Of a stretch of 64,000 bases of DNA, positions 1 through 26,200 are shown piece by piece. The notes under the pieces were generated by a model. It worked only from the letters and a program-made list of their open reading frames with translations, ran no database searches and was not told where the DNA came from. A program made the translations under genes and the position numbers. Numbering within the stretch: position 1 is the stretch's first letter; each line of letters opens with the position of its first letter. The stretch is from Mytilus trossulus. Taxonomy: Eukaryota. The DNA is taken from contig NC_086378.1 in NCBI RefSeq assembly GCF_036588685.1, positions 5,394,001-5,458,000 on the forward strand, written 5' to 3'.

Positions 1-414
1 AGTTGGGCCTTTGAACATATTTTTCTCTTGCACGTAATGATTTCGATAGTATATATTTCTTGCAGATTCGTTAAAAACAATATGCATTTTATTTTTTCAA
101 GAAATACAAATTGTCACATCAACATATTTAGAAGAGGATACTACTTTGTAACATTATTCTTTTATGTTTTATGTCTTTACGGTAGCCTTCTGCTGTACCT
201 GATCAAAATCTTTTAATCACAGGTTTCTTCAAATGACTTTCTACAATGTCGAATGATTCCATTTGATTTGTATGGTAGTGAATTATCGAAAAGACCATAG
301 TCATTCTTTCGCTGGCTTGTCTTGTGTCTGTATTTAAACAGTAAATGATTTAAGTATGGAGCTTTGTCAATTTGACGATAAACACGAAGTTAATAAAAAC
401 AAATGGCACTGTGC

Positions 415-3400
415 CTAAGACTTGGTCTTTTGCAGAAGTTCCTCCCCTTTTTTTGTTAGCAAATTTACAATTTCAATTTTCCTGTTTATTATAGCATAGT
501 GCAATGGGTTGTATCCTTCTAAGCATAAAATGTCCCTACTTTTGACATCATTTACATATTCTAGTATAAGTCTTACTATATCAATACTGCCTTGTATGCA
601 TACTACGTGTAAAGGAGTAAGCATTGATGTTGATGATCGTGTTTCTACATCTACGGATCCTGTATATTTGAGCAGTAATGAAACGATGGGATATAAATTT
701 CTTTGACAAGCAATGAACAACGCTGTATTGTTATCATTGTTTGCCAAACCAACTTCGGGTTTAGCTTGAAGAAGTAGTTCAACCACTTTTATATTCGCAA
801 TCATGCAGGCATTGTGCAACGGTGTATTACCAGAAATATTTCGGATATTGACATCGATCGAATCTTTTTTCAATAATGCCTGGACGATTTTTACATATCC
901 TTTGTCAGATGCAATATGGAGGGGAGTTTCATTTTGAACATTGATATTATTGATTGCAGCGTTGTTTTTCAGTAACACTTCTAAAACTTCAGTATCATTA
1001 TTCTCACATGCAGCATGGAGGGGTCTTGTGCCATCTTTATTTGGTTGATTAATATCTGCATTGTATTTTGTCAAAACATCAATAACGTCTGAATGTCCTT
1101 CTTTCGATGAGATGAATATTGGCGTTTGCATTGATGTATTCCATTTATTGACATTAGCATTATTGCTTAGTAATAATTTGGCTACTTGTTTATGACCCTC
1201 TGAACATGCTAGATATAGTGGAGTTCTACCCTTATCGTCACTTTTGTTCAATTTCGCTTTATATTTTACAAGGATTTGTACAAGCTGATAATTGCCGTTC
1301 AAACATGCCATTTGTAAAGGCGTACAAGTGTTGTCCCCATCATCAACATCTACACCCTTTTCAAGCAAAAGTTGAGCTATTTCTATGTTACGTTTTTGGC
1401 AGGCATGGTACAGTGGAGTTGCTTGTCCTTTAATTTTTTTCTTGATTAAACCATCAAATTTTAGGAGTAGATCGACCATATCAGCATTAGAGTGAATGCA
1501 TGCTAAATGGAGGGGAGTAATGCCTCTGTTGTCACTTTGAGTGCTTATGGCCTTGTGATCAAGTAATAAATTTGTTAGTTTTATATTATTACTCTGACAT
1601 GCCATATAAAGTGCAGTCATGCCATTTATATCACGAATTTCAACTTCAATATCCTTCAGTTTAATAAGGCTTCAGTAAGCTCCTGATGTTCATAAGAACA
1701 TGCTACGTGAAGCGGAACCAACTCGTTTTGAAAATATTCATTAACACTTGGACCATTTTGCAAATTCAAAATGTCTTCGACTATCTCTGTTCTTCCATTA
1801 AGACAAGCTATGAAAAAAGGAACGCAATTATCTTCGTCAGTTAAACTTAGCAACGCATTATTTTTAAGTAAAACTTTGACAAGTTCTAATGGCCCCTTTT
1901 GACAACTTAGATGTAGAGGCGTTGAGCCTTTAATATTAGGTAGGTTAACAATGCTCTGATTGATTGAGATCATTCGTTCTACTATTTTGGAATGTCCTTT
2001 TATACAGGCTATGTGAATTGGTGCATTGCCATCGCGATTTTTCTTTTTAAGCCGTACTTCATTTTCAAGAAGCAAGTCTACAAGTTCACAGTGTCCCATT
2101 TCACATGCAATAGACAGAGGTGTTTCGTGATCATTGTCTTCACCATTTTTATCACTGCCAGTCTGCAGTAGAGTTGTACAGATTGCTTTGTACCCAAAAT
2201 AACAAGAAATATGGAGAGGCGAAAACCCATTCAGATTACATTTATTGATGTCTGCCCGATTAGAAATTAAAATTTCTACTATTTCATTTCTCCCATAGAA
2301 GGAAGCTATATATAACGGAGTTGCTCCTGTGTTTGTAATTTTATTAATATCCGCGTGTTTTGTAAGTAATAAATTGACCATATTTGTATATTGCATCATG
2401 CAGGCGACGTGAAGGAGAGTCCATCCATGTATATCATCTTTGTTAATAAATTCGTAGTCGGATGTTATTTCTAATATACTAACAACTTTTTCTTCGTTTC
2501 CTTCTCTACAGGCCTTATGAACTTCGTCTTCCTTTTCCTGTATTCTGTAGTCTTTTGCATTGTGACGCTGTAACAGGTTAATAAGATTTGCATTATGGCT
2601 TTTGAGTGCTACAGATAAAGGAGTTTTTTTAAATTTGTCCTCAATATTTACGTTGGCGTTACATTTGATCAATAACTTAGCTATGTGAATTTTTTCCGAC
2701 TTGCAGACCATTAATAAACACGTTTCGCCTTTGTTATTCTTAAGGTCAATATTTGCTTTCAGCTTCAACAAAAGCTCGACCAAATCTGCATTTCTAGAAT
2801 TACATGCAATATGAAGCGGTGTCATTCCTTCATTGTTATATATATTTACAGAAATATCAGTTTGGTAGCCATTTGAATCATAACATAATAGTTTCACTAT
2901 ATCAGTATTATTAGAATACTTTTTGCATGCTACAAATAACGCCGTTTCGCCATCGAAATTGCGTGTGTTTAACCTGGAAAGTGGCACAAGTTTCTCAACT
3001 ATTTTTTTATGATTGTTATGACAAGCTTTATGTAAAGGTGTTGTACCATCTATATCGTAATGATAAACTGCGCAATTTTGTTCCAGTAAAAAGTTCACGA
3101 TATGCAACTGTCCTCCGCGACAAGCTAAATGTAACGGAGTTTCTCCTCTGTAATTGCACTGGTTAATTGCAGCATGGCGTTCACAGAAACATTTGGCAAG
3201 TTCGATAAGACCATGCTCACATACATAATGAAATGGATTGTTTCCGTTTGTGTCACATTGATTTATCGTTGCATTGGATTCTAACAGAAGCTCGACAATC
3301 CCATAATGTCTATGCAGACATGAAACTTGCAATGGCGTCGAATTTTGAATATTCCCTTGATTAACAATCGCGTCATTTTCTATCAATATCTTACATATAC

Positions 3401-4460
3401 TTTCAAGTCCCATCTTGCACGTTTCGTATAGGGGTGTCTGACCTTCTATGTCTACATGGTTTATCAGTGCACCTTTCTTCAGTAGGAGATAGCACATGCT
3501 TTTATTATCACCAACACATGAAACATGTAAAGGAGTACGACCTTGCTTATTACCTTGATTCACAGACGCTCCTTTGGACGTTAGATATTCCACTATATTT
3601 TCAAAACCGTTTGTGCATGCTTTAAAAAGTGCTATTTCTCCAAACATATCTGCTGTTTCGATTTCTGCAGCATTTTATATAAAGAAATCAATCATCGCTT
3701 GGTCGCCATTTTCGCAGGCTAAATGTAAAGAAATAATTCTTTCTCCTCCAACTGTATTAACTAGGGCGTCATGATTCAATAACAATTGAACAATATCTGT
3801 GTTCTGAGCTAATACGGCTGCATGAAGAGGTGTAAATCCATTTATTGTGTTTATATGGACAGAAGCGTCAAACTTTAGTAATAATTTGACCAAACCTTTA
3901 TGACCTTTCTGGCTTGCTATGTACAAAGGCGTACTCCCTGTACCAGTCCCGCAGTTAACTTCTGCATTATTTTGCAGTAATGTTAAAGCTATCACATCGT
4001 TGCCTATTTCACATGCAAGATAAAGAGGTGTTGCTCCAGTGCTTATTTTGCTATCTAAAATTTTACAATTTCTTTTCAGTATCAACTCAACTATGACAGT
4101 AAGTCCTTTAAAGGAAGCAATGTGTAATGCGCTCCACCCATAATCATTTGCACAGTTGATATCTGGGTCCTTGTCCAGCAATATCTTACTTACATCCATA
4201 TGTTCGTTGTAACAACTCAGCATAAGAGGAGTTACATTATTACAGTCTTTTGCATTGATTGAACTATCATTCTTTAAGAGTAGTTTTACTATTAGATTTT
4301 TACCATAACTAGCTGCATAGTGCAATGGGGTTCTCCCTGTATTATCTACTGCTTCTATCATCGAAGCTTCTATTTCAAGAAAAAAATTGTGTCAGGTTGT
4401 AATAACCATGCGCTGCAACAACATGCAATGCTGTGGATCCATCTTTTAAAGTCTTTTGAA
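415..4460 (-). CDS. Ankyrin repeat array (about 35-40 repeats), interrupted
   Basis: Continuous 33-aa G-x-TPLH-x-A repeats across four ORF pieces. Confidence 0.95.
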
Positions 4461-5588
4461 GACTTAACTCATTATTCTTCAACTGAGTAATTAATTTTAC
4501 TCTGTAATCCTTTATTTGTGTTTGGTTGCTGCCTAGTACATCCCAGTTCATCCCCTCTCTTAGGTCCCTTAAAGTTCTGGTGAAAAATGCGTCCTCAAAT
4601 TCTACTGGAATTGATAAGATGTCATTGCTATGAACTGTTTTGAGGGATTCTAAACGTAGTTTGCTGCTAATGAAAGAAGAATTTCCATGTTCTATGATAC
4701 ATTTGATAAATTTCATTCCTATCTGTTGTGAAGCTACATCAAAAATTGTGTCGTGAATGAATGAAAAGTACGAATTCTTTTTAATGTAACAGTGATTGCT
4801 TAGTATATCCCAAATTGTTTTTGTGATGGAGGATAGCCCATGCGATGTTGGTATTAATCCTGCATTATTATTATATAACTATCGTTTGTCAAGGATGCAT
4901 CTAATGCATTATTGAATACTATTAGAAATGCAAGAGCTAAATACGATTCATCTGATTCCTTCATTATATCAATCTCTCCAAATGGAATTGATTGTGACGT
5001 CTGGTCCAACCGCAGTGAGCACAGTAAAGGGAAACTTTTGTATTTTTCAATTGTTGCATCGTCCGGTAACCTGTTTATTGGAAAATAAAGTTTAGCCATT
5101 TCTTTTTTCTCATTCAAAGATAAATCTTGCATTTCATAAACACTGCAGTTTGAAACTATTCCTTCTAAACCTCTTTCTTTGACACTTTTATAAATATCTG
5201 ACCTGCAGGTCAAAAAAATCTTTGTCTTCGTTTTCTCTACAAATGTATCATATATATTGTTCATACAATTTTGCCAACAGTTAATGCGATAAGAATCAAA
5301 AGAAGATATTCCAAAAACGTCATCTAAGACGAATACCTGCTTTTGAAAAGGGTTAATAAGAGCCGTTATGTCAGCACATGTGGAGACCGCAGTGAGATTG
5401 TATCCTTGCTTTTCTTCCAAATTCAACGCAATGTAAAATGCTATGGCTGATTTTCCTGACCCAGACAGTCCAGATATCAATATAATTTGATTACTTGACA
5501 CGAGTTGTTCAACAGCTTTAGTGTTCTCGGAGTAGTCAAATTTCGTCAACTTTTTTTTCCATTCATTTTTTTTTAGGTCTTCCCTTTT
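4460..5588 (-). CDS. nSTAND3-type STAND NTPase and downstream helical region (frameshifted)
   Basis: Walker A GLSGSGKS (5471-5448), Walker B VFVLDD (5336-5319), sensor LTCR, FPLLC and FIHDTIFD motifs typical of bivalve nSTAND3-ANK proteins. Confidence 0.8.
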
Positions 5589-7094
5589 CTGAAAAAAGAG
5601 CAATAGCATTATTTTACAGAATGATTAATTTACTTTTATATAAAATAATTCAATTTTGAAATAGAAGATCAACCTTGCTAATTGAAAGATAAGTGAAGCA
5701 TTATCATGGTATATCATTCTTTGTCGATCATGAAGGTCAGGTTATGATATTGTTGCACTTGTGTACTTCATCATTGTCTGTCAAATGTATGGCTCGAATC
5801 TCTACCAGTTATACCCCTAATGATACTAGAGATACACTGGCACTCGTATACATGTAGAATCTACCACTGTATCGACGGTGATTCGATATTCACCCACTTG
5901 CGACACTTAATTTTTAATTTAAAATGCAAGGCACGCCGAGTGGATAAAATTCGTATTGCACAAGACTTGTTGGTGTAATCTGTTTCTCTAATGATTTTCC
6001 AACGATTTCCAGACAAACGCAATACCTTCTTCTGGATGATCTACAAAAAGGTGTGTTCTTTGTGTGACGACATCAGGCATGGTCGCCTTTTTTCTTGACG
6101 TAACAATAAAAATATCGATTAAAACAGCAGAATTTGATGTTATTATCGAATTTTTACTAATGAAAAAATTAATCAAACGAATCACACGTTTAGAATAGAA
6201 ATATTCAACAGGTCAGGTAAGGCTAAATCGTGTTAGATTTTGAAAAGTATAATAGTCATTGATGACAGTATTTGGAATGCAATACAATATTTGTAAGACT
6301 GAATGATTCTATGTTTAATACAAAAATAAATTATGTGGTTATATTGCCAATGAGCCAACTCTTCACAAGGAACCTAAATGACACAGCAAAGCCAATATCG
6401 CATAGTCAACTATTAAATGCCCGAAAAGAACATATAAAACAATTTAAACGAGAAAACTAACGGCCCTGTTTATGTAAAAAAAAAATGAAAAAAAAACAAA
6501 TATGTAACAAACACTGATATACAGGCTCCTAACTTGGGACAGGCACATACATAAATAATGTGGCGGGGTTAATAAACATGTTAGCGGGATCCCAACCCTC
6601 TCCCTAACCTGGGACAGTGGTATAACAGTACAACATAGGAACGAACTATAAAAATCATTTGAAAAAGAAAGAACTCATCAGATGGACAAAAATACAAGTG
6701 GAAGTGTCCGGGTACTTATACATCCCGAGACAAAAAGACAAAATGAACAGATCTGAGAGTACTCGCAGTTATCTGACAGCTAGTTCAAAGCCGCTAATAG
6801 CCAATAAAAAAAAAATACATGCATCTAAGACTAAACTATCAATTATTATGTTTGTTGTTTTTATGTTAAGCCGATCCGATGAGTCAAGCTCTTTCCTTGT
6901 GAGCTACTTCAATACTGTCCAACATTTTGGAAAATGGTTGATAAAACACCGACATATTCATACAAAATATTTTGGATATTGTTGGTTATTGTCTTCAATA
7001 ACTGTGTTTGTAATTATGTTCAGTTTTCACAAACCAGGTTCAAAACATGAAATGCCCTGAACCAAGTCAGGAAAATGACCATAGTTACATTATA

Positions 7095-7311
7095 CCGTAT
7101 AGCGGGTTATTTTCGCGGGTGTAAAATTTCGCGATTTTCATTGAACAAGGTATACGAAATATTTTGGCGGTTATTATTTTGGCGGATTAAAAACTTGTAT
7201 TAATACCTTTGTATGTACACTTTTAATTTGGCGGAATTTATTTTGGCGATTAAGTTCTTTCCGCGAAAATAAGCGAAAATTTGCACCCCGCGAAAATAAC
7301 CCGCTATACGG
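7095..7311. mobile_element. MITE with TA target duplication (Tc1/mariner-type)
   Basis: TIR ccgtatagcgggttattttcgcggg...cccgcgaaaataacccgctatacgg, flanked by TA; second copy at 26515-26731. Confidence 0.9.
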
Positions 7312-7767
7312 TAGTTCGTTGCTGTGATTTCATTACGGAGTTGTGTCTCACACCTCAGAATACAGTGCTTATAGTTAGGTTACCTACTAACACCGAATGC
7401 CGTTAAGTAAGTTGCTACATACATGTATATAAATGTAAATAGAAAAACCAAATCACGAAAATTCAAAAGAGAAAAACAACACTAATCAGGAATAAAGAAA
7501 GGCAAAATCAACAGTAGTATACCACTGTTACAAATTCATGAATCGAAAGAGAAAAAACAAATCCGGGTATCAACATAAAACTGAGGGAAACGTATCAAAT
7601 ATTAGAGAACTACGACACAACAGAGACACAACTTATTGATATTAATTGCGATTTTCGTACATCAAATAAACTTGTTTTCGGTTATGGTCGATTTTCTTCT
7701 TTCGATTGAAATTTTTTCGGTTTTAATATACCACATATTTTACAAGTACAACTATAATGAACATTAC

Positions 7768-7903
7768 CTTCTGACATTTGTCTAATGAACATCATTGACA
7801 TAACTTGTTTTTGCAATTGTTCATATAGAGTTGGATCAGTTCTACGAAGTTCAGAAAACTCGTCGCAGTCAGATATCAAACTGGGTTCTAACACACATAT
7901 ATT
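7768..7903 (-). CDS. Exon 3, HEPN C-terminus / helical linker
   Basis: tttcag|NICVLEPSLISDCDEF...QMSE G|gtaatg; phase 0 entry matches the end of exon 2. Confidence 0.7.
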
Positions 7904-8252
7904 CTGAAATAAAGAAGAAACTAGTTTATCCTTTTCGTCGTGCATTCATTTCCCTTAATGTTATTATCTGCATATATCTGAAATATTTTTTAGGTTACTG
8001 TAATAGTTTTGTTAAGAAACTGATATTTGGACAGCTGTAAAGAGATCTTTACACAATCCTTTTATTCATATTTTACTTAAAAAGGTTGAAACTTATACTG
8101 ATATTTAAGGTTTATTATACCTTAATTCCTTTTTTTTTTAAATAATAATGACTTTTCTTAAAGAAAATAAGGTTGAATTAACATGTCAATTCTTTATTTC
8201 TAATGAGTGGCAAATAAAAAATATTAAATTAATTAACTTCTTTACTTAATAC

Positions 8253-8476
8253 CTCCACAATGTCTTGCACGAGATTTGAATATACTTCCTCTGCAACAGA
8301 ACCATTATTTGTGTGTGAATATTTATTTCTGTAGAACTTTAATATGGAAATAGCTTCGCCTTCACTTTTATCACGATGTAAGGGCAATTCATCACATATC
8401 CCAATATCAGTCAAATGACGCAGGAGGAACACCATTAATGTAATATCAAACTTTTCAGAATCAGGATCCGGCTCAC
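8253..8476 (-). CDS. Exon 2, HEPN core
   Basis: FDITLMVFLLRHL...LP...D.SEGEAISILKFYRNKYSH; RxxxxH motif (RNKYSH) at 8330-8313; phase-compatible splice sites. Confidence 0.85.
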
Positions 8477-9502
8477 CTGCAAATAATCAAAGAAAATTGA
8501 TTTCCATATATAACTTGCCGCGCAAATTTCACAGTTAAATTTATAATTTTTTTATTATTTTAGGTAGTGAACCTCTCCCTTGTTTTGCAATCTGAAAACT
8601 TGATATCCTAAAGTCCAGATTTATTTTCCCCGTTATTTTTTTAACTACTATTATCTTAAGATTCGGGAATGTTTTTGTAAAATGGCTTTTATTTATTAAT
8701 ATCACAATATATTTTATAATGCATTTTCATTAAAATCAAAAACAAAAATATGGATGGAACTAACACGATGATTTAAATTAACTGTAAATAAGATGATAAT
8801 TCTATATGATTTGCATATAAGGGAATACGTTGATATGATTGGCCAAGGGGACTTCCGGTAGTTGTTCTTGACGTTGGTTATTTTACGATAGACGACGTTG
8901 ACCGAACTTTTTTCGTTACCAATGTAAACAATATGGTGGCAATAATAACAGTGACGTTAACAAAATTTATTTTCACTGCACGTAAATCATAAAATAGAAT
9001 AATACACACAAAATCATTCGTTTGAATGATATTAAGAGTTTTTGCAAAGTATTTTTATCAAATAGCAAATTTCATTGTGTACATATTTTGGCGTTAACCA
9101 ACAAATTTATTCGTGCACCAGGCCTATTTAATGACATGATAATACAATTTACGTTAACGAGCGTGGAAAGGTATATGGTGGACTAACATGTGTTCTATTA
9201 TTTTTGAGAGAAATATTATTGCATCTCAGAATGAACAAAAACAGATAACAATTTTATAACGCGTATTTGTTATTGTTTGTATGTGGAAATCCGGCCATAT
9301 GCACCAAACAATCATAGGTAAATATTGTAATGCCAAAATATTTAAGATGATATTAACATACTTATGGAATTACATTTTAGGAATCACGTAGCTGCAAATG
9401 ATAAAGAATCAATGATAAAAACTGAGGATTCTTATTGATGGCATAATTAGTTGCAAACATGCTCAGATTATATCAAAGTCCAAATTCACTTATTTGAATC
9501 AG

Positions 9503-9892
9503 TTCGGACGCAAGAAATTAATAACGTGTTGTTTTCAATATTTTACATCACTGGGTCGATACCTCTGCTGGTGGACTATCAGTCCCCGAGGGTATCATCA
9601 GCTCAGTAGTCAGTATTTCGGTACTGACATGATTAAACAACTTTACTAAAATTGTCCGTTTATAAATTTATAAATTATTAAGAAACTAAGGTTTCAACTC
9701 CCTCAGGCAAAGTTGGCTTTAGATGAATTTGACTATTTATTTTAGGTATTTTTGACATACAGCTCTTCAACGGTTTCGGTACTTATACATCTTCGGATTT
9801 CAAATGTTTGGCTTTGAGCGTTCCTGATGAAGGTAAATCCAGAAAAGCGCTTCGGACGCAAGAAATTAATAACGTGTTGTTTTCAATATTTT
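9503..9892 (+). mobile_element. Non-LTR retrozyme-like unit (348-nt monomer plus about 42-nt terminal redundancy)
   Basis: Direct repeat ttcggacgcaagaaattaataacgtg... at 9503 and 9851; contains a hammerhead motif; internal similarity to the 45965-46525 family. Confidence 0.8.
9818..9859 (+). ncRNA. Minimal type I hammerhead ribozyme (variant)
   Basis: Stem I GCGUUC/GGACGC, CUGAUGA 9824-9830, weak stem II (A-GG-uaaau-CC-A), GAAA, stem III with GCGC loop, UUC cleavage site after 9853. Confidence 0.7.
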
Positions 9893-9984
9893 AGGTAGTT
9901 ATTATGTTTGTCATCGATCGGATGAATAGAATGAATGTACAAACTATTTGATAAAGCATTAAAATAAAACAAAATGAATCATAC

Positions 9985-10189
9985 CATATGAGGGGTATAT
10001 CAGATTCCATTGGGGTGTACTGATGAATTGTTTCTTGCCCTGAAGTTTTCTTCTACTTTTATTCAGGTGTTCCTTCAACTTTTTTGGATGTATTTCTCTA
10101 TTGAAGACAACCCTGACAGCTTTCGTCGATACAACATTTAAAAGGTATATTAACCGAAAATAATTCACCTGATCCTTTTCTAAATCCAT
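9985..10189 (-). CDS. Exon 1, N-terminal half of DZIP3-like HEPN domain
   Basis: MDLEKDQVNYFRLIYLL...AVRVVFNREIHP...QWNLIYP; acceptor tttacag before 10203, donor G|gtatga. Confidence 0.8.
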
Positions 10190-10559
10190 GACGTCAGGTG
10201 TTCCTGTAAAAATCAATATAAAAGAAAAGAAACCATTATCAACTGTTTTTTTAAGAAACTAATCATTATTCCTTGTTTTCCTCTAACATTGTGTTTGATG
10301 TCTTCATGTATTGCTACTCATGATAATTAAAGGTGTATTTTGCCATATCATAGAAAATAATTTAGAACTGACTTTGCAGTATGAGTTTAATTCATTGTTG
10401 AAGGCTATATACAGTAAGTTATGTGTCATTTTACCTCTTGTGGAGAATTGTCTCATTGGCAATCATTTAATATATTTTCATTTTATATTGTAAGATTTTG
10501 CGGTTTCTACATGATATCGTTGTCAGTTTCTCTTCGACGAAGACGAATATTTTTCAAGC

Positions 10560-11068
10560 AGGTTGTCATGATTTCCTTGATGAAGGGTTAATGCTCACAA
10601 GGAAGCTATAAAACCAAGAGTTCCGAATTTCAAATCAAAGTTCAAATCATCCTTTCGTAAGTTGAACATACGCCATCATGAGTTGGTTGACTGTTATGGA
10701 ATAACAGTTTCACAGATGATATCGGATATTTTCCTTATTTGTCTGTGTGTCATTTTATTTTTTAGCATATTATTCCTGATGTCATAACTTCAATATATTC
10801 CCCTCAACACGGATGTAACCTGCCAAATTATACTATCTATCGAATTTGTAATAACATGTGGAGCAAGACCTGCTTACACATCCGGAGCACCTATCGATCA
10901 CTCCCAGTTTCTGGCAGGGTTCGTGTTGCTTAGTCTTTAGTTTTTCAATATTGTATCTTGTTTACTATTATTTGTCTGTTTTATCTTTTTCTTTTTTTAG
11001 CTGTGGCGTTGCCATTTTATTTCCAATTGATGAGTTTGACAGTCCCTCTGGTATATTTCGCCCCTTTT
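10560..11068 (+). mobile_element. Penelope-like (Naiad-type) 3' fragment
   Basis: Degenerate match to the RT C-terminus and 3' tail of 59143-60317. Confidence 0.75.
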
Positions 11069-13539
11069 TGAAGCTAGTTCGAAATATAAGCGTAAACTTT
11101 ATCATTTAAAGTGTGTCATTTATTTAATTTTTGTACGAAGGCATAAATGTTATCATATAGGGAATGAAACACACATATGTTATTAGTGTAATATTTCGTT
11201 AAAATATTGCCACGGACTCTAGTGTTCTCTAATATCTATCATTTATATGATTTCGGTGTTATTTGTTTAATCCAAGTAAGGATTTTATTGTCGGGTAAAA
11301 AGTAAATTCAGAAAAGTACTGAACTTTGAGGTAATTTCAAATGGAAAGGCACTAATCAAATAGCAAAAGCAAATGTTCGAACACATCAAACAAATGGATA
11401 ACAACTTTCATATTCCTGATCTTATAGCTAATATTCACGGATAGTTCTCTCAAATTTCAAAATTTTAGCATGTCCGCTATAATCGTAAAAAGTTATGTTG
11501 TCAATATACCGGATAAATAAACAACTGGCTTGCCAGTAGTAGGTTTAGATGGCTATAAAACTAGATTTAATCCACTATTATTTCGACAAATGCATGTATG
11601 GAGTCAGGTATAAGGAAGTTTTTTTTGTCACCTTTTCCGTAAATAGATGACTGTTTATTTTAAAACAGTTTCATTTTTTGGATTTGTCTTGGAGTTCGAT
11701 AATTTTATCTAGTATAAACAAATGTTAATTCACAAAAATACTGAACAAAGAGAAAAATCAATTTCGGAAAGTCCATAATCACATGGCAAAATCAAATAAC
11801 AAAACATATCATATACGAATGGACAGGAACTGTCATACCCCTGACTTGGTACAGGCATTTTCAAATGTAGAAAATGGTGGATTAAACCTTGTTCTATAGC
11901 GCTAACCCTCTCACTTTAATGACAGTCTTATCAAATTCCGTTATATTTACATTGATGCGTTAAATATACAGACACAATTAATAAAATAGTCAAAATATGG
12001 GTACATCAGTCATAATGTATACTGTCACGTCTCCCCTCAGCTTTGTACAGTTTATCTGTCTTGTTTCTGATTTTAATTTCGAGTCAGCTGAGTAATATTC
12101 AATGGACATTTCTTTACTTGATTTACCTGTTTATTATAGTGTATCATAATGTTCAAAATTAATAATCACGGTATTCAGAAATGATTCAATCTTATTAAAT
12201 AAATAGTTGATTTAAAATCTAGATTTAATGAATACATTTTATAGTGTGTCTTTCTATGTTGGGATGTAATACTATTGTTTCAGAAAATCAAAAGGTTTGG
12301 TATTATTAAAACGTTAATGCCGCTGAATTGATTGAACCTGTCCTAATTCAGGAATCTGATATTCAGGGGTTGTCTTCTGTTTATGTGGTTCATAAATATT
12401 TCTCGTTTCTTTTTTTTTTATAAAGATTAAACCGTTGGTTTTCCCGTTTGAATGGTTTTACACTAGTATTTTCGGGGGCCTTTTATAGATTTTTGTTCGG
12501 TGTGAGCCAAGGCTCCGTGTTGAAGGCCGTACATTGACCTATAATTGTTTATTGTTATCAATTGTGACTTAGATGGCGAATTGTCTAATTGGCACTCATA
12601 CCACATCTTCCTATATCTATTGATGAATAAACAATACGAATTAATTAACTATCAATTTCTGCTTATAACTTACCAGTGGAATTGAGTGGAACCTGGCCAG
12701 ACGTATAAAACAACAACGTTTACGACTACTTAATTGTATATCAATGTTTTCTGTAACCCTTAAACAAAGTGTCAATTCATTATCAGTTATGTCAGATATG
12801 ATATTATATGTATATCTGATATCATATGGTATAAGTAGAGAGTTTGTAATATACCATCAAACTTAAATATTTGAGTGAACTATCCACTTTTGAAGAAGAA
12901 AAAAAAATCTCGGGGCTTTAAAGTTGCATGCTGGGTTTGAATGCACAAGATCACAGCTTTGATATACAGCTGAATACAATCTTTGTTTAAACCAAACGAA
13001 TAAAACGACTAATGTATTTAACTGTCGCTTTGTCATTTCCCAGAGAGAGCATATACCTGATCCCCAAGCTTGTTGTCGTCACAATAAACACGAAACGTTG
13101 CGATTTAGTGTTTCTAGCGAACTTCAATAAATTACAGCGTTCGTACTCAATGAATTTGAAAGGCGGGCTATAAAACATTTTTTTTCTTACCTTATTTAAT
13201 TTACAAGAAAACCATTCATGATTTCTGGTTTGGATTATTTGCTTTGTCTTCAGTTATCGAAAGTATTTTTAGTATCCTGTACTTTCTGTTTGTTTTGTCA
13301 TTCTATTTTTTTTTTTTTCCTTTTATGGATCTTGTGCTACATTATAGTATGAATTTCAAGATTATATATTCGTCACAATAAAAAGTTTTTTTTTTCTAAA
13401 TCTGTTCTTTGTAAAATACATAAAACCTTGTTGGTAGATAATCCATATCAATTTCATAATTAGAATGTATTTTCTTATTTATTTTTCTTATATTTTTATT
13501 GTAGTCCTGTAATGTTATGTTGCCATTTTAATGTTATAT

Positions 13540-17225: not shown

Positions 17226-20200
17226 TCATAAAAGTATAAAGCTGACAAGGAATCCAAACATATATGTTACTACTGACACTTGATGGGTTGATGGTGCTTT
17301 CCCGATTGTATTATAATTTAAATTATAATAGTATACAAATGGTTCTGAAAATAGAGGTAGAAAGGTCCATGTTAAGTTAGTGAAAGACTTACCAGAAAAG
17401 TAGATTTTCAATTTGTTATTTAAATTTATATCAGTTGTTCGAATGTTCACAATAACTGTGGTGTAATGATTAAAACGTTAGTTGCTAACTTCTATGTTAT
17501 TTTGTCTTTGGTGGAGAGTTGCATCATTGACAATCTTACCTCATTTTCTTATTTTCATATGAAATAGATATATGAATTGCATGAATGTTTACAATATGTT
17601 GGCAACAATTGTGCAACGGGTTGATCATACCGAATTTTGTTTTCTTATTGGGTATTTAGAGCATTCGGAACTCGATGCACTTTTTTATAAGTGGAATAAA
17701 GAGAAATGTATGGTATGAGCGCCGATGAGACAACTCTCAATATGAACTTAAGTCATAGCAATAGTTTTCAGATTATGACAATACCGTTGTGACTTCTAAC
17801 TGAAGATTAACTAGTCATCAATAATACGATGGTTGTAACTAGCGGAACAAAATAGCTATCTCTATTTTAGCATTTTGATTTTCCCCGGAATTGGAAGGGT
17901 TTGTAATTCAAAGTCATATTTTTATCAGTGTTTGATATCTTTTCATGTGTCTATATTGTATCTTCTTACCGCTTTACATTTGGATTTTTTTTTCGCAGAA
18001 AATATAGCAAATGAAATGGTTTTAAATTAAACATTGCTGATTCCAAATCATTTCGGGAAAAAAAAACAGCTAAGAGAAAATAACACTTTTCATTAAACAG
18101 TATAACAAACATACTCCAAAACTTCATTATGAGTTCAGATGCAATATGATAAAAAAGAAAGTAAGAAAAAGACATAAAAAAATAATAGTAGACAACACAG
18201 AAAAACTAAAGACTAAGCAACACGAACCCCTCAAAACACTAGGGATGATAACAGGTTCTACGGAAGGGTCAACAGATCCTGCTCCACATATGGCACATCG
18301 TGTTTCCCATGTTATAACAAACCCGGTAACTAGTCTAGTTCTGTAGGTCATATTGTATAAATATGCCAGTTAATGTATATTGATCCTCTAATGGTTTTTG
18401 CCTGTTATCTATTCCTTGCATACAAATATATATCTCGTACCACACTGACTATAGGTCAGCGTACAGTCTTTGACAATGAGAATAGCACATACCGCATTAT
18501 CAGCTATAAAAGTCACGAAATGACACATACATACCAAAAAGTGTAAATTTAGCTTGATTCTTTCCAAGTTTATTCAGAGCTGTACAGTAATAGTCTCTAT
18601 AATCGCTTCTTACTACATTGTTTATTTTTAATGTGTACCATTTCTCGTCATCTCTCAACCTCTCATCATATTGTTGTTCTAGCGTGTATTTATCATTATC
18701 CAGAATTTGTTCATTAATTAATGATGTTCTGTTTTCTTTATACCATATAACTTCTGCTCTGGGCTGAGCTAAAAATAAAACAAACATTTGGTCTCGGTAA
18801 TGGGATGGATATTGTATGTTTAAACTGAAACCAAAGACTTAAGATAAATATCTTCATAGTATAAATGTTTAGGAATAATAACGAGAGGCTCTCAAGAGCA
18901 TGTATAGCTCACCTGACACTACTTGGGTTTTAATATCATATAAATAAAGATAAAAAAAACGGTTTAATATTGCATTCCATTCTATGGTTTTCTAAAAGAA
19001 GACATGTGTATGTGTTTCTCAAGACCAATGTTTTTGTGTTGTTTCCATTTTTTCTTAATATCCTCAGAACAGTTCAATTTGTGTGTTACAATAGAGAAGA
19101 TAACGCTAATTGTTGTTTTATGCCCCCGAAACTTAGAGAAAGGGAGCATATTGGTTTATCTCTGTTCATCTGTCTGTCTGTCCGTTCGTCCTTCCATCCG
19201 CCTTATTATGATTATATAAATATTTAGCTCGAGTTCTGCAGTTTGAATTCTATGAAGTGTTCAATTTGCCTTCTGTTCTATATTTATTGAAATTGGTTTG
19301 GGTTTTGATTTGTTTTTTAAATTGCTATTTTGGGAGTTAGTTAAACTTTTTTTTTATTGTATATGCGGTTTGGTGTAACAGTTCTTTTAAAATAACACTT
19401 TGCATCCACAGGGATATTAATTGTGTCACTAAGACACAATAATATCACAAGGAAAGTCCAATATTTACTTTGTTATAATACTATAATACAGCTACCTCAG
19501 AGTGAAGTGAGCGGGCATAACTTTGTCCAGTTTCTATTTATCAAACCTAAATTTCTCATATTGATTTTTTTTATTAATATAACTTTTTAATCAAAACTCT
19601 AATATTGATGGAAACAATTGCAATTTTGTATTTCATATGTTTACCAAATACTAGGCATTCTAATATGGCATGATACATTCGATCTGGTTCTTGTCCGACT
19701 GTATCCTGGATAGCTGTACAATAAGGAGCACATAAGACTTTAAGCTGTACTGAGTATGATGCATGTGGCTTTACATTGTTATCAGCAGAACATATGAATA
19801 ATCCACGATCTGTGGCATTGACATTGTTAATTCTGTATAGTCCATTCTAAAAGTATAATAAATAAAGGCAATAGTTGGTACCACTGTTTAAAATTCATAA
19901 ATCGATTGGGAGAAAACAAGCAAAATCGAAGGAAACAAATCAATTGTAAGAGGACAACAACCGAACACCAGAAACACTACAGGTAATATAATTGTTAAAA
20001 AACGGAAAAAAGATACCAGAGGGATATTCAAACTCATAGATAAAAAAACTGAACAACGTCATGGTTAAAACATAAACAGACAAACTGACAAATAATAGTA
20101 TACAACATTGAAAACTCGAAACAAAAGCAACACGAACCCCACCAAAAGTTTGGGGTGATCTCAGTTTCCCCAACATAGTGAACAGATCCTGCTCCACATT

Positions 20201-23200
20201 TGACACTCATGTTAACTATTTATTTATATGGTTGTTGTTTGATACGTGACATTCAGAATACCATTCTACTTAGAAATTAATCATCGATTCTCTAAAATGG
20301 TACCAACCAATCATCAGAGTTGGTGTTGTTTGATAAGAGACAATTTAGAATACATTATTTCTGATCTAGTAAACTTTGATTCTCTTAATTAAAGCACTTG
20401 AATGGCGTACAAATAGAACCGTTAAAATTATCATCTAAAGAAAACGTAAATGGAATGGTCAATATCTGATTTGGTATTGATAATATTCATACATCTTAGA
20501 AATTTAAAAACAAAATTCATTCAACTACTTTTTCTTAAAAATATATATGACTGAATGAATACAAGTAAAAATGTGTGCAATCATTATTTGATATGCGTAC
20601 AAATAGAGCAAATTGTTCTCACATGCATCCCAATCCCCCAGAAAATAGTCAATGGAATGTGCCGTTTCAAATAAACTTTAACTTTAAGGTAAAAATAGCA
20701 TGGTTGGTCTTTTATCAGTATTCTTTTCCTATAAATAATAAACTAAATATTATTTCTTCGCCATTTTAAACGGTATTGATGATAAAATTGAAATATGACT
20801 TTTTTTCATAATAGCGACATACACAGTGGTTTTGTTTTCTTGATAGAGACAAGCGTTTTGTCAGGTTATATGGACTAGTTTCTTTTAATTTAACTTGATA
20901 TAGGTGTTTTGTAAATACTAGTACCTTTTATGCAACGCATCATTTTGATGCCTGAAGGTCAACTGCATCCTTCCAATCTAACTAATTTTTTTTGTACACC
21001 AAACAAGTGACTTAGGAATTTGCCATTTAGAAATTTCTTCAGAGTGCGGTGCTTGTGTTATTGTACTTTTTTGATATTTATTTTCATACTAAAATGGCGA
21101 TTATCTCGACAGTATTCTATTTTATGTCCACACCCACTGTCGCTCTTATGGGGTTCCCTTAGAATCTTACAACAAGAAGATGCGCTATGATTGTTAATGA
21201 GACAATGCTAAACATGACGTTAACAATTTGTTTCTTATCTCGATTTGTATCTTCAAGATATATTGATGAGATTCGAATAAGGGTGAATTTAGTTTACTTA
21301 AATTGTTATGTGAATGGGACATTAAATATTGCATACAACCATCTGAGAGGCAATCATGTGTACAAATGATCATTTTTTATTTAACTTTCTCAGTTTGAGG
21401 TTATAAAGTTAAACTAAGACTTGTATAACCCTGAAAAATCACATTGAATAAGCGAAATCGCGCTGTTGCTCTGAACTGTTGTAAGCAAGTGCGTAAAACC
21501 AGTGTAACTGGTTGAAATAGATGTTGTATTTGGGTAAAAAAAAAGTGTTTCATTTGTTATACTAAAATTACATTTAAAGCTATCTCTCATATATTTCCTG
21601 ACAGTCAACTAACAAACGACAAGGGTGATCACTACGACACTTATTGCTGTTCATAACAACAAACATAGTTTTTTTTCTGAATTAAATAAAAGCAACAGTA
21701 GTTTACCGATGTTCAAAACTCCTTTATAATAAGAAATGTCATACGTAACACATTGATCCATTAGAAATTAATAAAGTTGTTTTTTTAAAACGATAAACAG
21801 ACGAAATTGAGGCGTACTCTGCATCATTTATATTTCAGCAATATGTAACTTCAAACTTGATAGTAGAATAACTTGAATGTTTAATATTAATTACAAATGC
21901 ACTGTTTTCTAGGAAAATACAATAAAGTTTTCACAGTATATTTCTATGAAAAAAGTATAATAACAAAAATACTGCGTTAAAAACATGTATGAACTTCAAG
22001 ACAGTTGAATTCAGATATACAGATAAATGAATAAAAGCTAAAGTTTTTGGTCAAGGTAGTTTTTCATGAAGTTGAAGTCCAAACAACGTGAAACTTAGTA
22101 AACATGTTACCTATGATATGATCTTTCTAATTGTAATGAACAATTACAGTTTTTTTATCCCAATTTCATGTATCACTGATCATGGAAAATGATGGTGCGA
22201 GTGGGGCATCCGTGTACTATGGACAAATTCTTGTATATGAGAAGATCTGTTTCAATGTATCCTAATTCTTCAAAATTCATTTGGACGGTATAAGACAACA
22301 GCACAAGAAAGTATGTCGGTACAAAGTCAGTTATAAATTATACTGTCGAGATAGTGTAGAGACATACTTCAGGCTTTCAAAAGTGTGTCAATATAAATTC
22401 AGACATATTAAGACTGTCAAGAGTGTGCCGAGACAGAATCAGATGCCATTACGAATATCAAGAATATGTCAAGACAGGCGACAATTTTTATCATTGTTAA
22501 AAGTGTCAAGACATATGTCGAGTCAATTAAAGAAATCACACAGATAGTAAAGAGCAATATCTAGAATATAGATACTTATTTAAGACAAATTCACACAGTG
22601 TCAAAACTTTTTGACAAAATGGAATGTCAGGTAAAATGTTATGTAAATTCAGAATTGGAATTTTAGACTTTGTGATAATTGTTGTGAATGCGTTAAATAA
22701 GAAAACAAAATCGAAATTCTTGTTTTATCTTTATTTGTATAAAAGTTAAAAGTAACTTTTGGGTCAAAAAGTTGCTCATGTAATTGCAGACAATAACGGA
22801 TTTATCATAAATAAAAAATCACAATAATAATAATTTGGTATTGGTATTTTTATTGCACGACAAGATTGAAAATAGAAATGTGGAATATGTCAAGGAGACA
22901 ACAACCTGACAAATGAGCAGACACCAGTCGAATAAATCTTTGATTTTGTTATTTTTTAGAAATATATATTTTAATTGAAGGAAAAATGATCATGAACGTA
23001 CATAAATAAGGCCGTTAGTTTTTTCTCTTTTGAATTGTTTTACATTGTCTTATCGTAGGTTTTTATAGCTGACTATACGGTATAGGCTTTGCTCATTGTT
23101 GAAGGCCGTACGATGACCTATATTTGTTTATGTGTGTGTCATTTTTGTCTTTTGTGGATAGTTGTCTAATTGGCAATCATAACACATCTTCTTTTTTTAT

Positions 23201-26200
23201 ATGAATTTAAAGGAGATGCATAATTTAGTTATTTATACATATAAAGAAATCAATTACACCAAAGGGGGTATAGCAGGGGTCATATAATTGATGTGTGACT
23301 TAGTTTGTAACGTGATATGAGTTGCGCCGGAGATGGGGTGGTTTTGTTGTACAAAAAATGGATATAAATATTATTTTCTTTTTATCTATTGATGTTTAGC
23401 ACTGTTAATCATCTTTATAATCTTAAACTAACTATAAGCTGTAGTCCACCATGATGGAGCGGGGATCCGTCTTCTCTTTTCCATGTGATATTTGGTAATG
23501 GATAACCATAAGCTTCGCAAACTAGTGTGACGTTTTCTCCTTCCTGTACAGTAATAGTTGCAGCACTAGCAGTTGTTATGTACGGAGCAACTGTAAATAC
23601 GTTTTATATGATATTATTTATTAATACGTACTGATTTTTGTTTTTAAACCTTATCGTATATGTATGCAAAATTTATGCAGAACAAAATTCAAATTTTTAT
23701 TTTTTAAACCTTTTCCAGCATTGTGTTGGTAATTGCAGTGGTAATGAGACAGCAACAGTGTTAACTGTTTCCAAAACTTTTTTTTTGAAAAACGTAGGCT
23801 TGTCTACTTCAGGAATAGATTACCATAGCTGTATTTGGCAACATTTTTAGGAATATTCGGTTCTCAATGCTCTTTAACTTAGTACTCTATTTGGCCTTTT
23901 AAACATTTTTGATTCGAGTATAACTGATGAGTCTTTTGTAGACGAAACGCGCGTCTGGTGTAAATATATTGTTTTAATCCTGGCATCTATGATGAGTTTA
24001 TTTGATACTTTAAAATGATATTTTGCAATCGGGATTTTATTTCTGGGATTCGATAGAAATTTGAAATAAATGCATAAGCGGTATGGGGTTTGCTCGTTGT
24101 TGAAGGTCGTATGTAATGCTATAGTTGTCAATTTCTGTGTCATTTTTTCTATTATGGAGGGTTGTCTCATTGGCAATAATGGCTACTTTAATATTTACAC
24201 TGGGCAATAATACTGTCAATAAATTCAGTTTTTAATGATCAACAATAAGTTGTATGTACAGAACCACAGTACAGTACTATAGCAAAAAACACTGATCTAG
24301 AAATGACCTCATGCAATTAGCTAGTTAAAATATTTCATGAATTGTTTAAATAAATTTAGCATATAAATAGAAGTAATGATAAAAATTCTATTTGGTTAAA
24401 AAAAAAAGTGAAAATATACTAAGGTTATATGACTCGACTCATTTCAATGGAGTAAACCAACACATGTAGAAATAATGGGAACGTTACGCATCTTTACATA
24501 AAGGCAACCGTAGTATTATTATATTCAAGAAAAGAAAAAAAAAATTAAGTACAAAGCTGAAGAGTATTGAACACTTGAAAATTTTACAAAATTTTTAAAA
24601 CAATCGCTAGCAAAGCATTTTTAGACTCAAAGTATATAGGTTAATTAACTCGTGATAGTGATAGTAAAACGTATTAAATGTAGATTTTAGTCATTTTTCA
24701 TCACCTGTTAAAGCAATTTTAATAAAGATTTAAAATCCATGTCCTCTGTGTGTCTCTTATTAGATAAAAGATCAAAATGTCAATAAGACTATCGGTTTTC
24801 TATTAGCGCCTTTTTGTGGCGGAAGCACTCATTGAAATGTGGAATTTCAAGTTAAACGACACCATCAATATATCTAAAAGTTAAAATATAGCCTATGAAA
24901 CTTGATTATGACAAACACCCAATTCCCATACAGCATCTTGAACTAAAGTGCAAAACTCCTTGTCCATTTATCACAAAATAGTAAAAAGGTTTTTAATATT
25001 GTCGTAATAAATATAACAGAGTTAAATGACGTATTGTGATCAATTGTTATAACTTACTTTGTACAGTTACACTATTTAACATTCTAGTTAATTCCTCGTA
25101 GTTGTGATTTGGAAGATATATCTGACATGTGTAGTTCCCTGCTTCAATCTCTGTAAGTGACTCTATCATCAGTTGGTACGTTTGACGGTTGTTTCTTCTG
25201 TATTTCACTACACTATATGTGCTTCTCTCTTCAACAAATAGATCAAATCGAACAATGCCATCCGATGAAATATATGACGGATCATCAGTTGAGTGGGTCT
25301 TTGTATTCCATTGTGACTGTCAATCATAACAATGTATTATTTTATGAACAAAATGTCCAACGTAAGGATACATTTTATTTTTGCCCTTCAGATGTGTTAA
25401 ATATATATTTAAGAAAATTTTGTCAATATATGCTGTTGCTACTCAAATTTTATTTTGTCAAAATTGGCTCAATGGAAAAATGATTTTATTTAAAGGCAAT
25501 GTTTTATTTACAATTCAAACATGACGTCCTTCAAACGCTGTGAGTACACATCCGTAGTTAAATATGAATTTATTGCATGGGCTGTTCCAATCGTACTCCC
25601 ACGTCATTTTCTTTTTTATGAATAAGCTTACCGACGTAATAGAACGATAACGTCAGAATATAAGCATTTTACGAGAAAATATACGCTTGTGAAAGCGAAA
25701 ATCATCACAACAATGACACGTGAACAACGATGCAAAAAATGTGCTATATAAACCATTGTTTGTATCCATATAAAACAAAAAAAGTTAAGTTATAATTTAC
25801 TATCATCAAAACCTATCTAAATACGTTATTGAAAATATTTAAAGCATGTCATTTATTAAGTTTGCTCTGTTCTCCCACGTACATTTAAAAGTGGGTATAT
25901 TTATGGGAACGGCAAATAATGCCTTCACCTAGGACGCTTCGATCCAAATGAATTGCCGTATTTGTCCTATTAGAATCGAAATAATCCAGAGGGGCTTGAA
26001 TATATCCTGATTTTACCACGGGTTGTCCCTTTATGTCTATATTTTACTCCTCGCCTTCGCTCAGGGGTAAAATATTTTTCATATAGGCCAACCCGTGGTA
26101 AAATCACGATAAATTCAAGCCCCTATGAATTATTTCTTAAATATGTATATATAACTTTATAAATTTGGAAGTGGAGAACACTCTTCTTTATTTACCTTTA

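Follow-up and report, generated by a model that had tools for sequence, protein, structure and literature searches.

Does the HEPN-NTPase-ankyrin gene on the minus strand of NC_086378.1 in the mussel Mytilus trossulus encode a working immune receptor? The gene lies within a 64,000-nucleotide (nt) stretch of DNA (the window: positions 5,394,001 to 5,458,000 of the contig, or C6:5.394-5.458 Mb in the 1.3-Gb assembly GCF_036588685.1); coordinates given without a contig prefix count from the first base of the window. It has four coding exons: three short ones (A to C), which encode a HEPN domain of the DZIP3 type, and a long last exon (D), which encodes an nSTAND3 NTPase followed by ankyrin repeats. 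The initial annotation of this DNA had proposed a functional innate sensor armed with an RNase. The HEPN-STAND NTPase-ankyrin architecture proved to be real; the working sensor did not, since this copy carries three frameshifts, one in-frame stop, and a clash of reading frames between its HEPN and NTPase halves. The locus is probably a young pseudogene or null allele, in this assembly, of a mussel HEPN_DZIP3-nSTAND3-ankyrin family.

The last exon occupies positions 5588-418 (5.2 kb). It follows the acceptor TTTTTTCAG|AAAAGG and ends in TAG at 417-415, after which poly(A) signals (AATAAA/ATTAAA) are found at about 217 and 93. Three-frame translation yielded five open pieces rather than one frame, separated by three frameshifts and one in-frame TAA, all given here on the minus strand. 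The first lesion (4857-4878), located in an (ATA)n tract, shifts the frame by a net -1, and a TAA stop comes next at 4856-4854; the open frames on its two sides overlap. In an intact paralog at C12:30.607 Mb, whose 1046-codon open frame runs continuously across lesions 1 and 2, this region is uninterrupted coding sequence, and the gene model of the closest relative, Mytilus edulis CAG2228881.1, jumps over it. The second lesion, a T7 run (4380-4386), produces a +1 frameshift and then TGA at 4377-4375; both the paralog and the M. edulis protein read through without interruption there (TQFFLEIEAS...). The third is the in-frame TAA (3675-3677), which falls within an ankyrin repeat (FFI*NA) at a position occupied by Lys in M. 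edulis. The fourth (1659-1671) is a net -1 frameshift close to an A3 run and leads into TGA at 1658-1656; the open frames overlap there, and the ankyrin periodicity carries on in the other frame. Small introns were considered as an explanation of these sites and ruled out: the paralog and ortholog proteins are continuous across them, and the shifts are of 1 nt.

A further break in frame was found upstream, where the HEPN exons meet the NTPase exon. Exon A (9985-10203, minus strand; acceptor 10204|10203) opens with ATG at 10189-10187 and supplies 68 codons plus 1 nt before a phase-1 donor (GT at 9984-9983). Exon B (8476-8253) has a phase-1 acceptor and a phase-0 donor, and exon C begins at 7903 in phase 0 and ends at either 7768 or 7763, at one of two candidate donors. 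The junctions A to B (phase 1) and B to C (phase 0) have canonical splice sites and keep the frame. At the end of exon C, the strong donor (AAG|GTAATG after 7768) is in phase 1 and clashes with the acceptor of the NTPase exon; joined to the only good acceptor, it runs into a stop nine codons on. In the paralog, too, the intron between these exons is in phase 1. The sole in-frame route from HEPN to NTPase is a weak phase-0 donor 5 nt downstream, AAT|GTTCAT after 7763, which is also the donor used in the M. edulis gene model, where the protein continues ...MSEGN|KREDL across the C/D junction. The earlier proposal that three small exons splice in frame to a DZIP3-type HEPN domain bearing the motif RNKYSH therefore stood as to coordinates, motif, Pfam family, and the first two junctions; the link onward to the NTPase exon is in frame only through the weak donor. 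No uninterrupted frame across all coding exons was found, and the phase clash at the C/D junction arises in addition with the strong donor. Because of the three frameshifts, the stop, and this clash, a full-length sensor cannot be made from this copy.

An A9 run lies at 5566-5574, at the start of the NTPase exon, and its length is one base off for the strong phase-1 donor. The M. edulis relative is apparently 3 nt shorter at this run, judging from the protein (KREDLKNEW versus KREDLKKNEW), and would still be one base off for that donor.

The M. edulis protein deserves closer comparison. A word search with the 244-residue NTPase piece returned one protein within the length window; a full representative search was then used, and it placed CAG2228881.1 (annotated "ANK"), together with its isoform CAG2228880.1, closest to the locus, with 95% identity over the NTPase. 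Across the HEPN exons, NTPase, and ankyrin pieces, identity to these two models ranges from 81 to 96%, and the A-B-C-D junctions are alike. The spliced HEPN domain of CAG2228881.1 scores 69.5 bits on the HEPN_DZIP3 profile. The models differ from the M. trossulus copy in several respects: CAG2228881.1 is uninterrupted at the T-run and TAA sites, lacks about 100 residues in the region of lesion 1 together with about three ankyrin repeats, and ends at roughly half of the repeats, and both models are fused to an upstream immunoglobulin (Ig) gene. Apart from these, no relative exceeded about 36% identity; the others belong to Mytilus species and to the ark clam Tegillarca, and several of them have the same HEPN-nSTAND3-ankyrin layout.

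Are the lesions real, or were they introduced during assembly? Their density in this copy is approximately 0.8 per kb. Of the 150 nSTAND3 matches listed in this assembly, only 6 contain a stop within the matched sequence, and about 59 belong to open frames that measure 1000 codons or more, the longest having 2952. Such a number of long frames is incompatible with errors that break the sequence about 0.8 times per kb, which makes assembly error unlikely. Moreover, the TAA of lesion 3 is a substitution and not a homopolymer slip. The sequence comparisons thus favor real lesions over assembly errors. Other copies are broken too, one at C12:30.58 Mb in three pieces and another at C13:9.26 Mb in two. 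Broken copies are normal for a large, fast-turning gene family. The small number of lesions over 5.2 kb, with the ankyrin repeats and catalytic motifs still clean, suggests a recent inactivation or a null allele.

Several points weigh against a pseudogene. All three frameshifts fall in slippage-prone sequence of a kind that also gives rise to assembly errors (a trinucleotide tract in one case, short homopolymers in the other two); the catalytic motifs are all present and the ankyrin consensus is still well kept; the M. edulis counterpart is annotated as protein coding; intact alleles may be segregating in the population; and the mechanism suggested below for the family is drawn from analogy only. 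One alternative is that the gene is intact and functional, with the four breaks being assembly errors or features of a single null haplotype in a population where a working allele is common. The positions of the frameshifts at T7, A3, and (ATA)n, the continuity of the M. edulis relative at the T run and its Lys at the TAA site, the good preservation of motifs and repeats, and the strong haplotype and presence/absence variation in bivalve immune gene families (PMC9646362) are all in its favor. However, a substitution to TAA is atypical of long-read error, and long unbroken frames are frequent elsewhere in the assembly. The M. edulis model needs two internal skips and an early end, which suggests that the gene is decaying there too, and the frame clash at the HEPN/NTPase junction is, in net frame, common to both species. 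On balance, we regard an intact gene as unlikely.

If the locus is a pseudogene or null allele, what could it still express? With the first stop placed just after the NTPase core, the product would be at most about 434 residues long and would have no sensor; if the strong exon C donor were used, a HEPN-only product of about 200 residues would result. The transcript may escape nonsense-mediated decay, because every premature stop is in the last exon. We give a small chance to two further possibilities. One is a retained partner or regulator of intact paralogs, similar to truncated plant NLRs and consisting of either a sensor-less HEPN-NTPase protein (about 434 residues) or HEPN alone (about 200 residues); the other is a balanced null allele, the working form of which would be a receptor armed with an RNase and with an NTPase of the Avs5 family. 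Taken by itself, the proposal that the truncated product is functional, as HEPN only or as HEPN plus the NTPase core without the sensor, and acts as a partner or regulator of intact paralogs has a very small chance. In its favor, the first stop (4856-4854) comes after an intact HEPN domain and P-loop core; premature stops located downstream of the last intron should all escape exon-junction-dependent decay; and nSTAND3-only proteins of 267 to 400 residues exist in databases, although many of these are possibly fragments. Against it, the downstream ankyrin sequence has few lesions and still forms repeats, which fits a recent loss and not a long-standing truncation, and the truncation interrupts the STAND module within its helical part, which is conserved.

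Almost no weight can be given to the remaining alternative, that HEPN-STAND-ankyrin and the upstream Ig-domain gene in truth form a single fused gene, as in CAG2228881.1 and CAG2228880.1: the M. edulis models do link Ig exons (25340-17241) to exon A via the acceptor 10204|10203, but in the window the last Ig exon continues into a hydrophobic tail that is closed by a TGA of its own (17228-17226), the copy at C13:9.256 Mb, among the paralog matches to exon A, also starts with Met here, and the fused model has no transmembrane segment between its extracellular Ig and cytoplasmic domains.

We next turn to the domains of this probable pseudogene or null allele, for which profile searches were made exon by exon. 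Exon B, the core of the HEPN domain, on its own matched Pfam HEPN_DZIP3 (PF18738) with 46.4 bits (E = 4.6e-12, profile positions 39-112), above the curated cut-off of 27 bits. Exon A encodes the N-terminal part of the domain; it covers profile positions 1-34 (E = 0.0087) and is collinear with exon B. Exon A is 81% identical to residues 377-444 of CAG2228881.1, and a counterpart ending in QW.L.YPS was found in four paralogs. The Rx4H motif RNKYSH translates from 8330-8313 in exon B. Its conservation among paralogs, on which the initial annotation had made its proposal depend, was borne out: RNxxxH is retained in 30 of the 30 nearest paralogous HEPN exons. A PDB sequence search with exon B gave a nonsignificant match to a HEPN toxin around the motif. 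Exon C, comprising the last HEPN helix and a linker, had no Pfam match by itself and no BLAST-level match among the paralogs. Its homology is recognized from 87% identity to residues 520-564 of CAG2228881.1 and from a short motif, IC..PS...DC, in common with the paralog protein P0014.

The NTPase piece (4857-5588, minus strand) matched Pfam nSTAND3 (PF20720) with 87.5 bits against a cut-off of 27.2 bits. The Walker A (GLSGSGKS, 5471-5448) and Walker B (VFVLDD, 5336-5319) motifs of this P-loop NTPase are those named before. In 57 aligned relatives, G43, G45, and K46 are invariant, and D89 and D90 are nearly so (at least 90%). An AlphaFold model of the piece had a predicted local distance difference test (pLDDT) score of 82.9. 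The top Foldseek match of this model was the STAND module of EfAvs5 (9jap; E = 8e-7, template modeling score 0.51), with generic AAA+ proteins scoring nearly as high; Dark, NLRP14, ZAR1, and SAMD9 were also among the matches. A PDB sequence search with the NTPase returned P-loop chance matches only.

Between the NTPase and the first ankyrin repeat lies a probably helical linker of about 130 residues, carried by the second open piece (4378-4878, minus strand). It is 40% identical to, and collinear with, residues 322-452 of the intact paralog, where ankyrin repeats likewise come next, and in this copy it is cut by lesion 1. No Pfam family was matched in the linker except the first ankyrin repeat. 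The ankyrin array itself (418-4460, minus strand) extends over four frame pieces and matches Pfam Ank and Ank_2 with E values of 1e-41 to 1e-111. We counted about 40 repeats, 35 by a strict motif and about five more in double-length gaps, in line with the 35 to 40 estimated earlier. The window pieces gave no Pfam match to NACHT or to leucine-rich repeats (LRR), with nSTAND3 and ankyrin repeats found instead. The gene is therefore NLR-like in layout only, and not an NLR in the strict sense of NACHT plus LRR.

How does this copy relate to the rest of the family? In the M. trossulus genome, candidate loci number at least 435 for nSTAND3 and at least 582 for HEPN_DZIP3, and the two kinds are often paired. 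For 45 of the listed NTPase exons, manual pairing of the two lists showed a HEPN exon, also listed, 1 to 12 kb upstream and on the same strand. The two nearest paralogs of the HEPN exon (49% identical) are located upstream of the two nearest paralogs of the NTPase (34%), at C12:30.58-30.62 Mb, which indicates that both halves evolve as one gene. Thus, in the family at large the HEPN exons appear to join the NTPase exon, as seen in the paired loci and in the A-B-C-D order of M. edulis. The broken nearest paralogs are L043 plus L044 (C12:30576001-30592000) and L048 plus L049 (C13:9256001-9274000); the last exon consists of pieces of 502, 197, and 602 codons in one broken copy and of 442 and 1045 codons in the other. 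The copy that retains the 1046-codon frame at C12:30.607 Mb is a neighbor of a broken paralog.

The Ig-domain gene (17226-25340) is a separate gene upstream on the same minus strand, and its exons match the N-terminal 425 residues of the M. edulis protein P0152. Because this gene ends with its own stop codon, the Ig-HEPN fusion in the M. edulis models is, as far as the sequence tells, an annotation artifact. The public M. edulis models for the locus can thus be flagged as chimeric, with fusions to the Ig gene and pseudo-introns that bridge frames. The hydrophobic tail and TGA at the end of the last Ig exon resemble a glycosylphosphatidylinositol signal or a tail anchor. Within intron 1 of the HEPN-nSTAND3-ankyrin gene we noted two perfect 43-nt direct repeats, 348 nt apart (9503-9893). 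An Rfam scan of positions 1-12000 at the gathering threshold gave no match, including no hammerhead.

For intact family members, known systems suggest a likely mechanism. The ankyrin array would hold the NTPase off until a ligand binds. Ligand capture would then allow the STAND module to oligomerize in a nucleotide-dependent way, like that of Avs and NLR proteins, and oligomerization would pair two HEPN domains, so that their Rx4H motifs together form an RNase site, which would cut viral or host RNA. For DZIP3-type HEPN domains, our literature search found no RNase assay. RNase L and Ire1 provide the mechanistic model for such a family: they use an RNase of the HEPN superfamily that is activated by ligand-induced dimerization, and ankyrin repeats are combined with it. 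In contrast to the mussel proteins, they carry a KEN-type HEPN domain at the C terminus, preceded by a kinase or pseudokinase domain; their domains are thus arranged in the opposite order, and they have no STAND NTPase.

The comparison with prokaryotic Avs proteins, offered initially as an analogy, turned out to be stronger than that. The NTPase of bacterial Avs5 is reported to belong to nSTAND3 (PF20720) as well (bioRxiv 10.1101/2025.07.08.663546), and EfAvs5 is the best structural match of the NTPase model. Avs5, or AVAST type 5, has the same tripartite plan of effector, nSTAND3, and helical-repeat sensor, in the form SIR2-nSTAND3-TPR/Sel1 repeats; the mussel gene differs in having HEPN and not SIR2 as the effector, ankyrin repeats as the sensor, and an animal host. 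PADLOC matched no Avs model at E < 0.01, the sequence similarity being too low, and its best match was the candidate system PDC-S73 (2.5e-10). The likeness to Avs5 thus appears to lie in the common Pfam family and the modeled fold.

Among animals, fusions of DZIP3/hRUL138-like HEPN domains with NACHT, ankyrin, Death, and other domains, expanded in oyster, were tabulated in 2013 (Anantharaman et al., PMC3710099), and cnidarian HEPN-NACHT expansions were counted in 2021 (PMC8260672). The pearl-oyster genome paper of 2022 (Takeuchi et al., PMC9646362) reported that HEPN at the N terminus of NACHT proteins is over-represented in bivalves, found Rx4-6H motifs, and proposed an antiviral or antitransposon role. 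The family studied here resembles the HEPN-STAND (NACHT) proteins of these three reports, which show lineage-specific expansions in bivalves and cnidarians, in its N-terminal PF18738 HEPN domain, central STAND-type NTPase, and C-terminal repeats, as well as in the conserved RNxxxH, the hundreds of clustered copies, and the antiviral RNase role proposed. It differs in that the NTPase is nSTAND3 and not NACHT, the repeats are ankyrin and not LRR, TPR, or WD40, and the present copy is broken. The idea put forward for this locus was consequently not new, given the fusions tabulated in 2013 and the antiviral proposal of 2022: the architecture and the immune role ascribed to it had been published in silico before, and the locus is a further, broken family member.

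The interest lies mainly in the family, an animal receptor class with a built-in predicted RNase effector that has expanded to hundreds of copies in mussels and shares its NTPase family with the antiphage protein Avs5. To this picture the decaying copy adds little beyond one dated example of gene birth and death.

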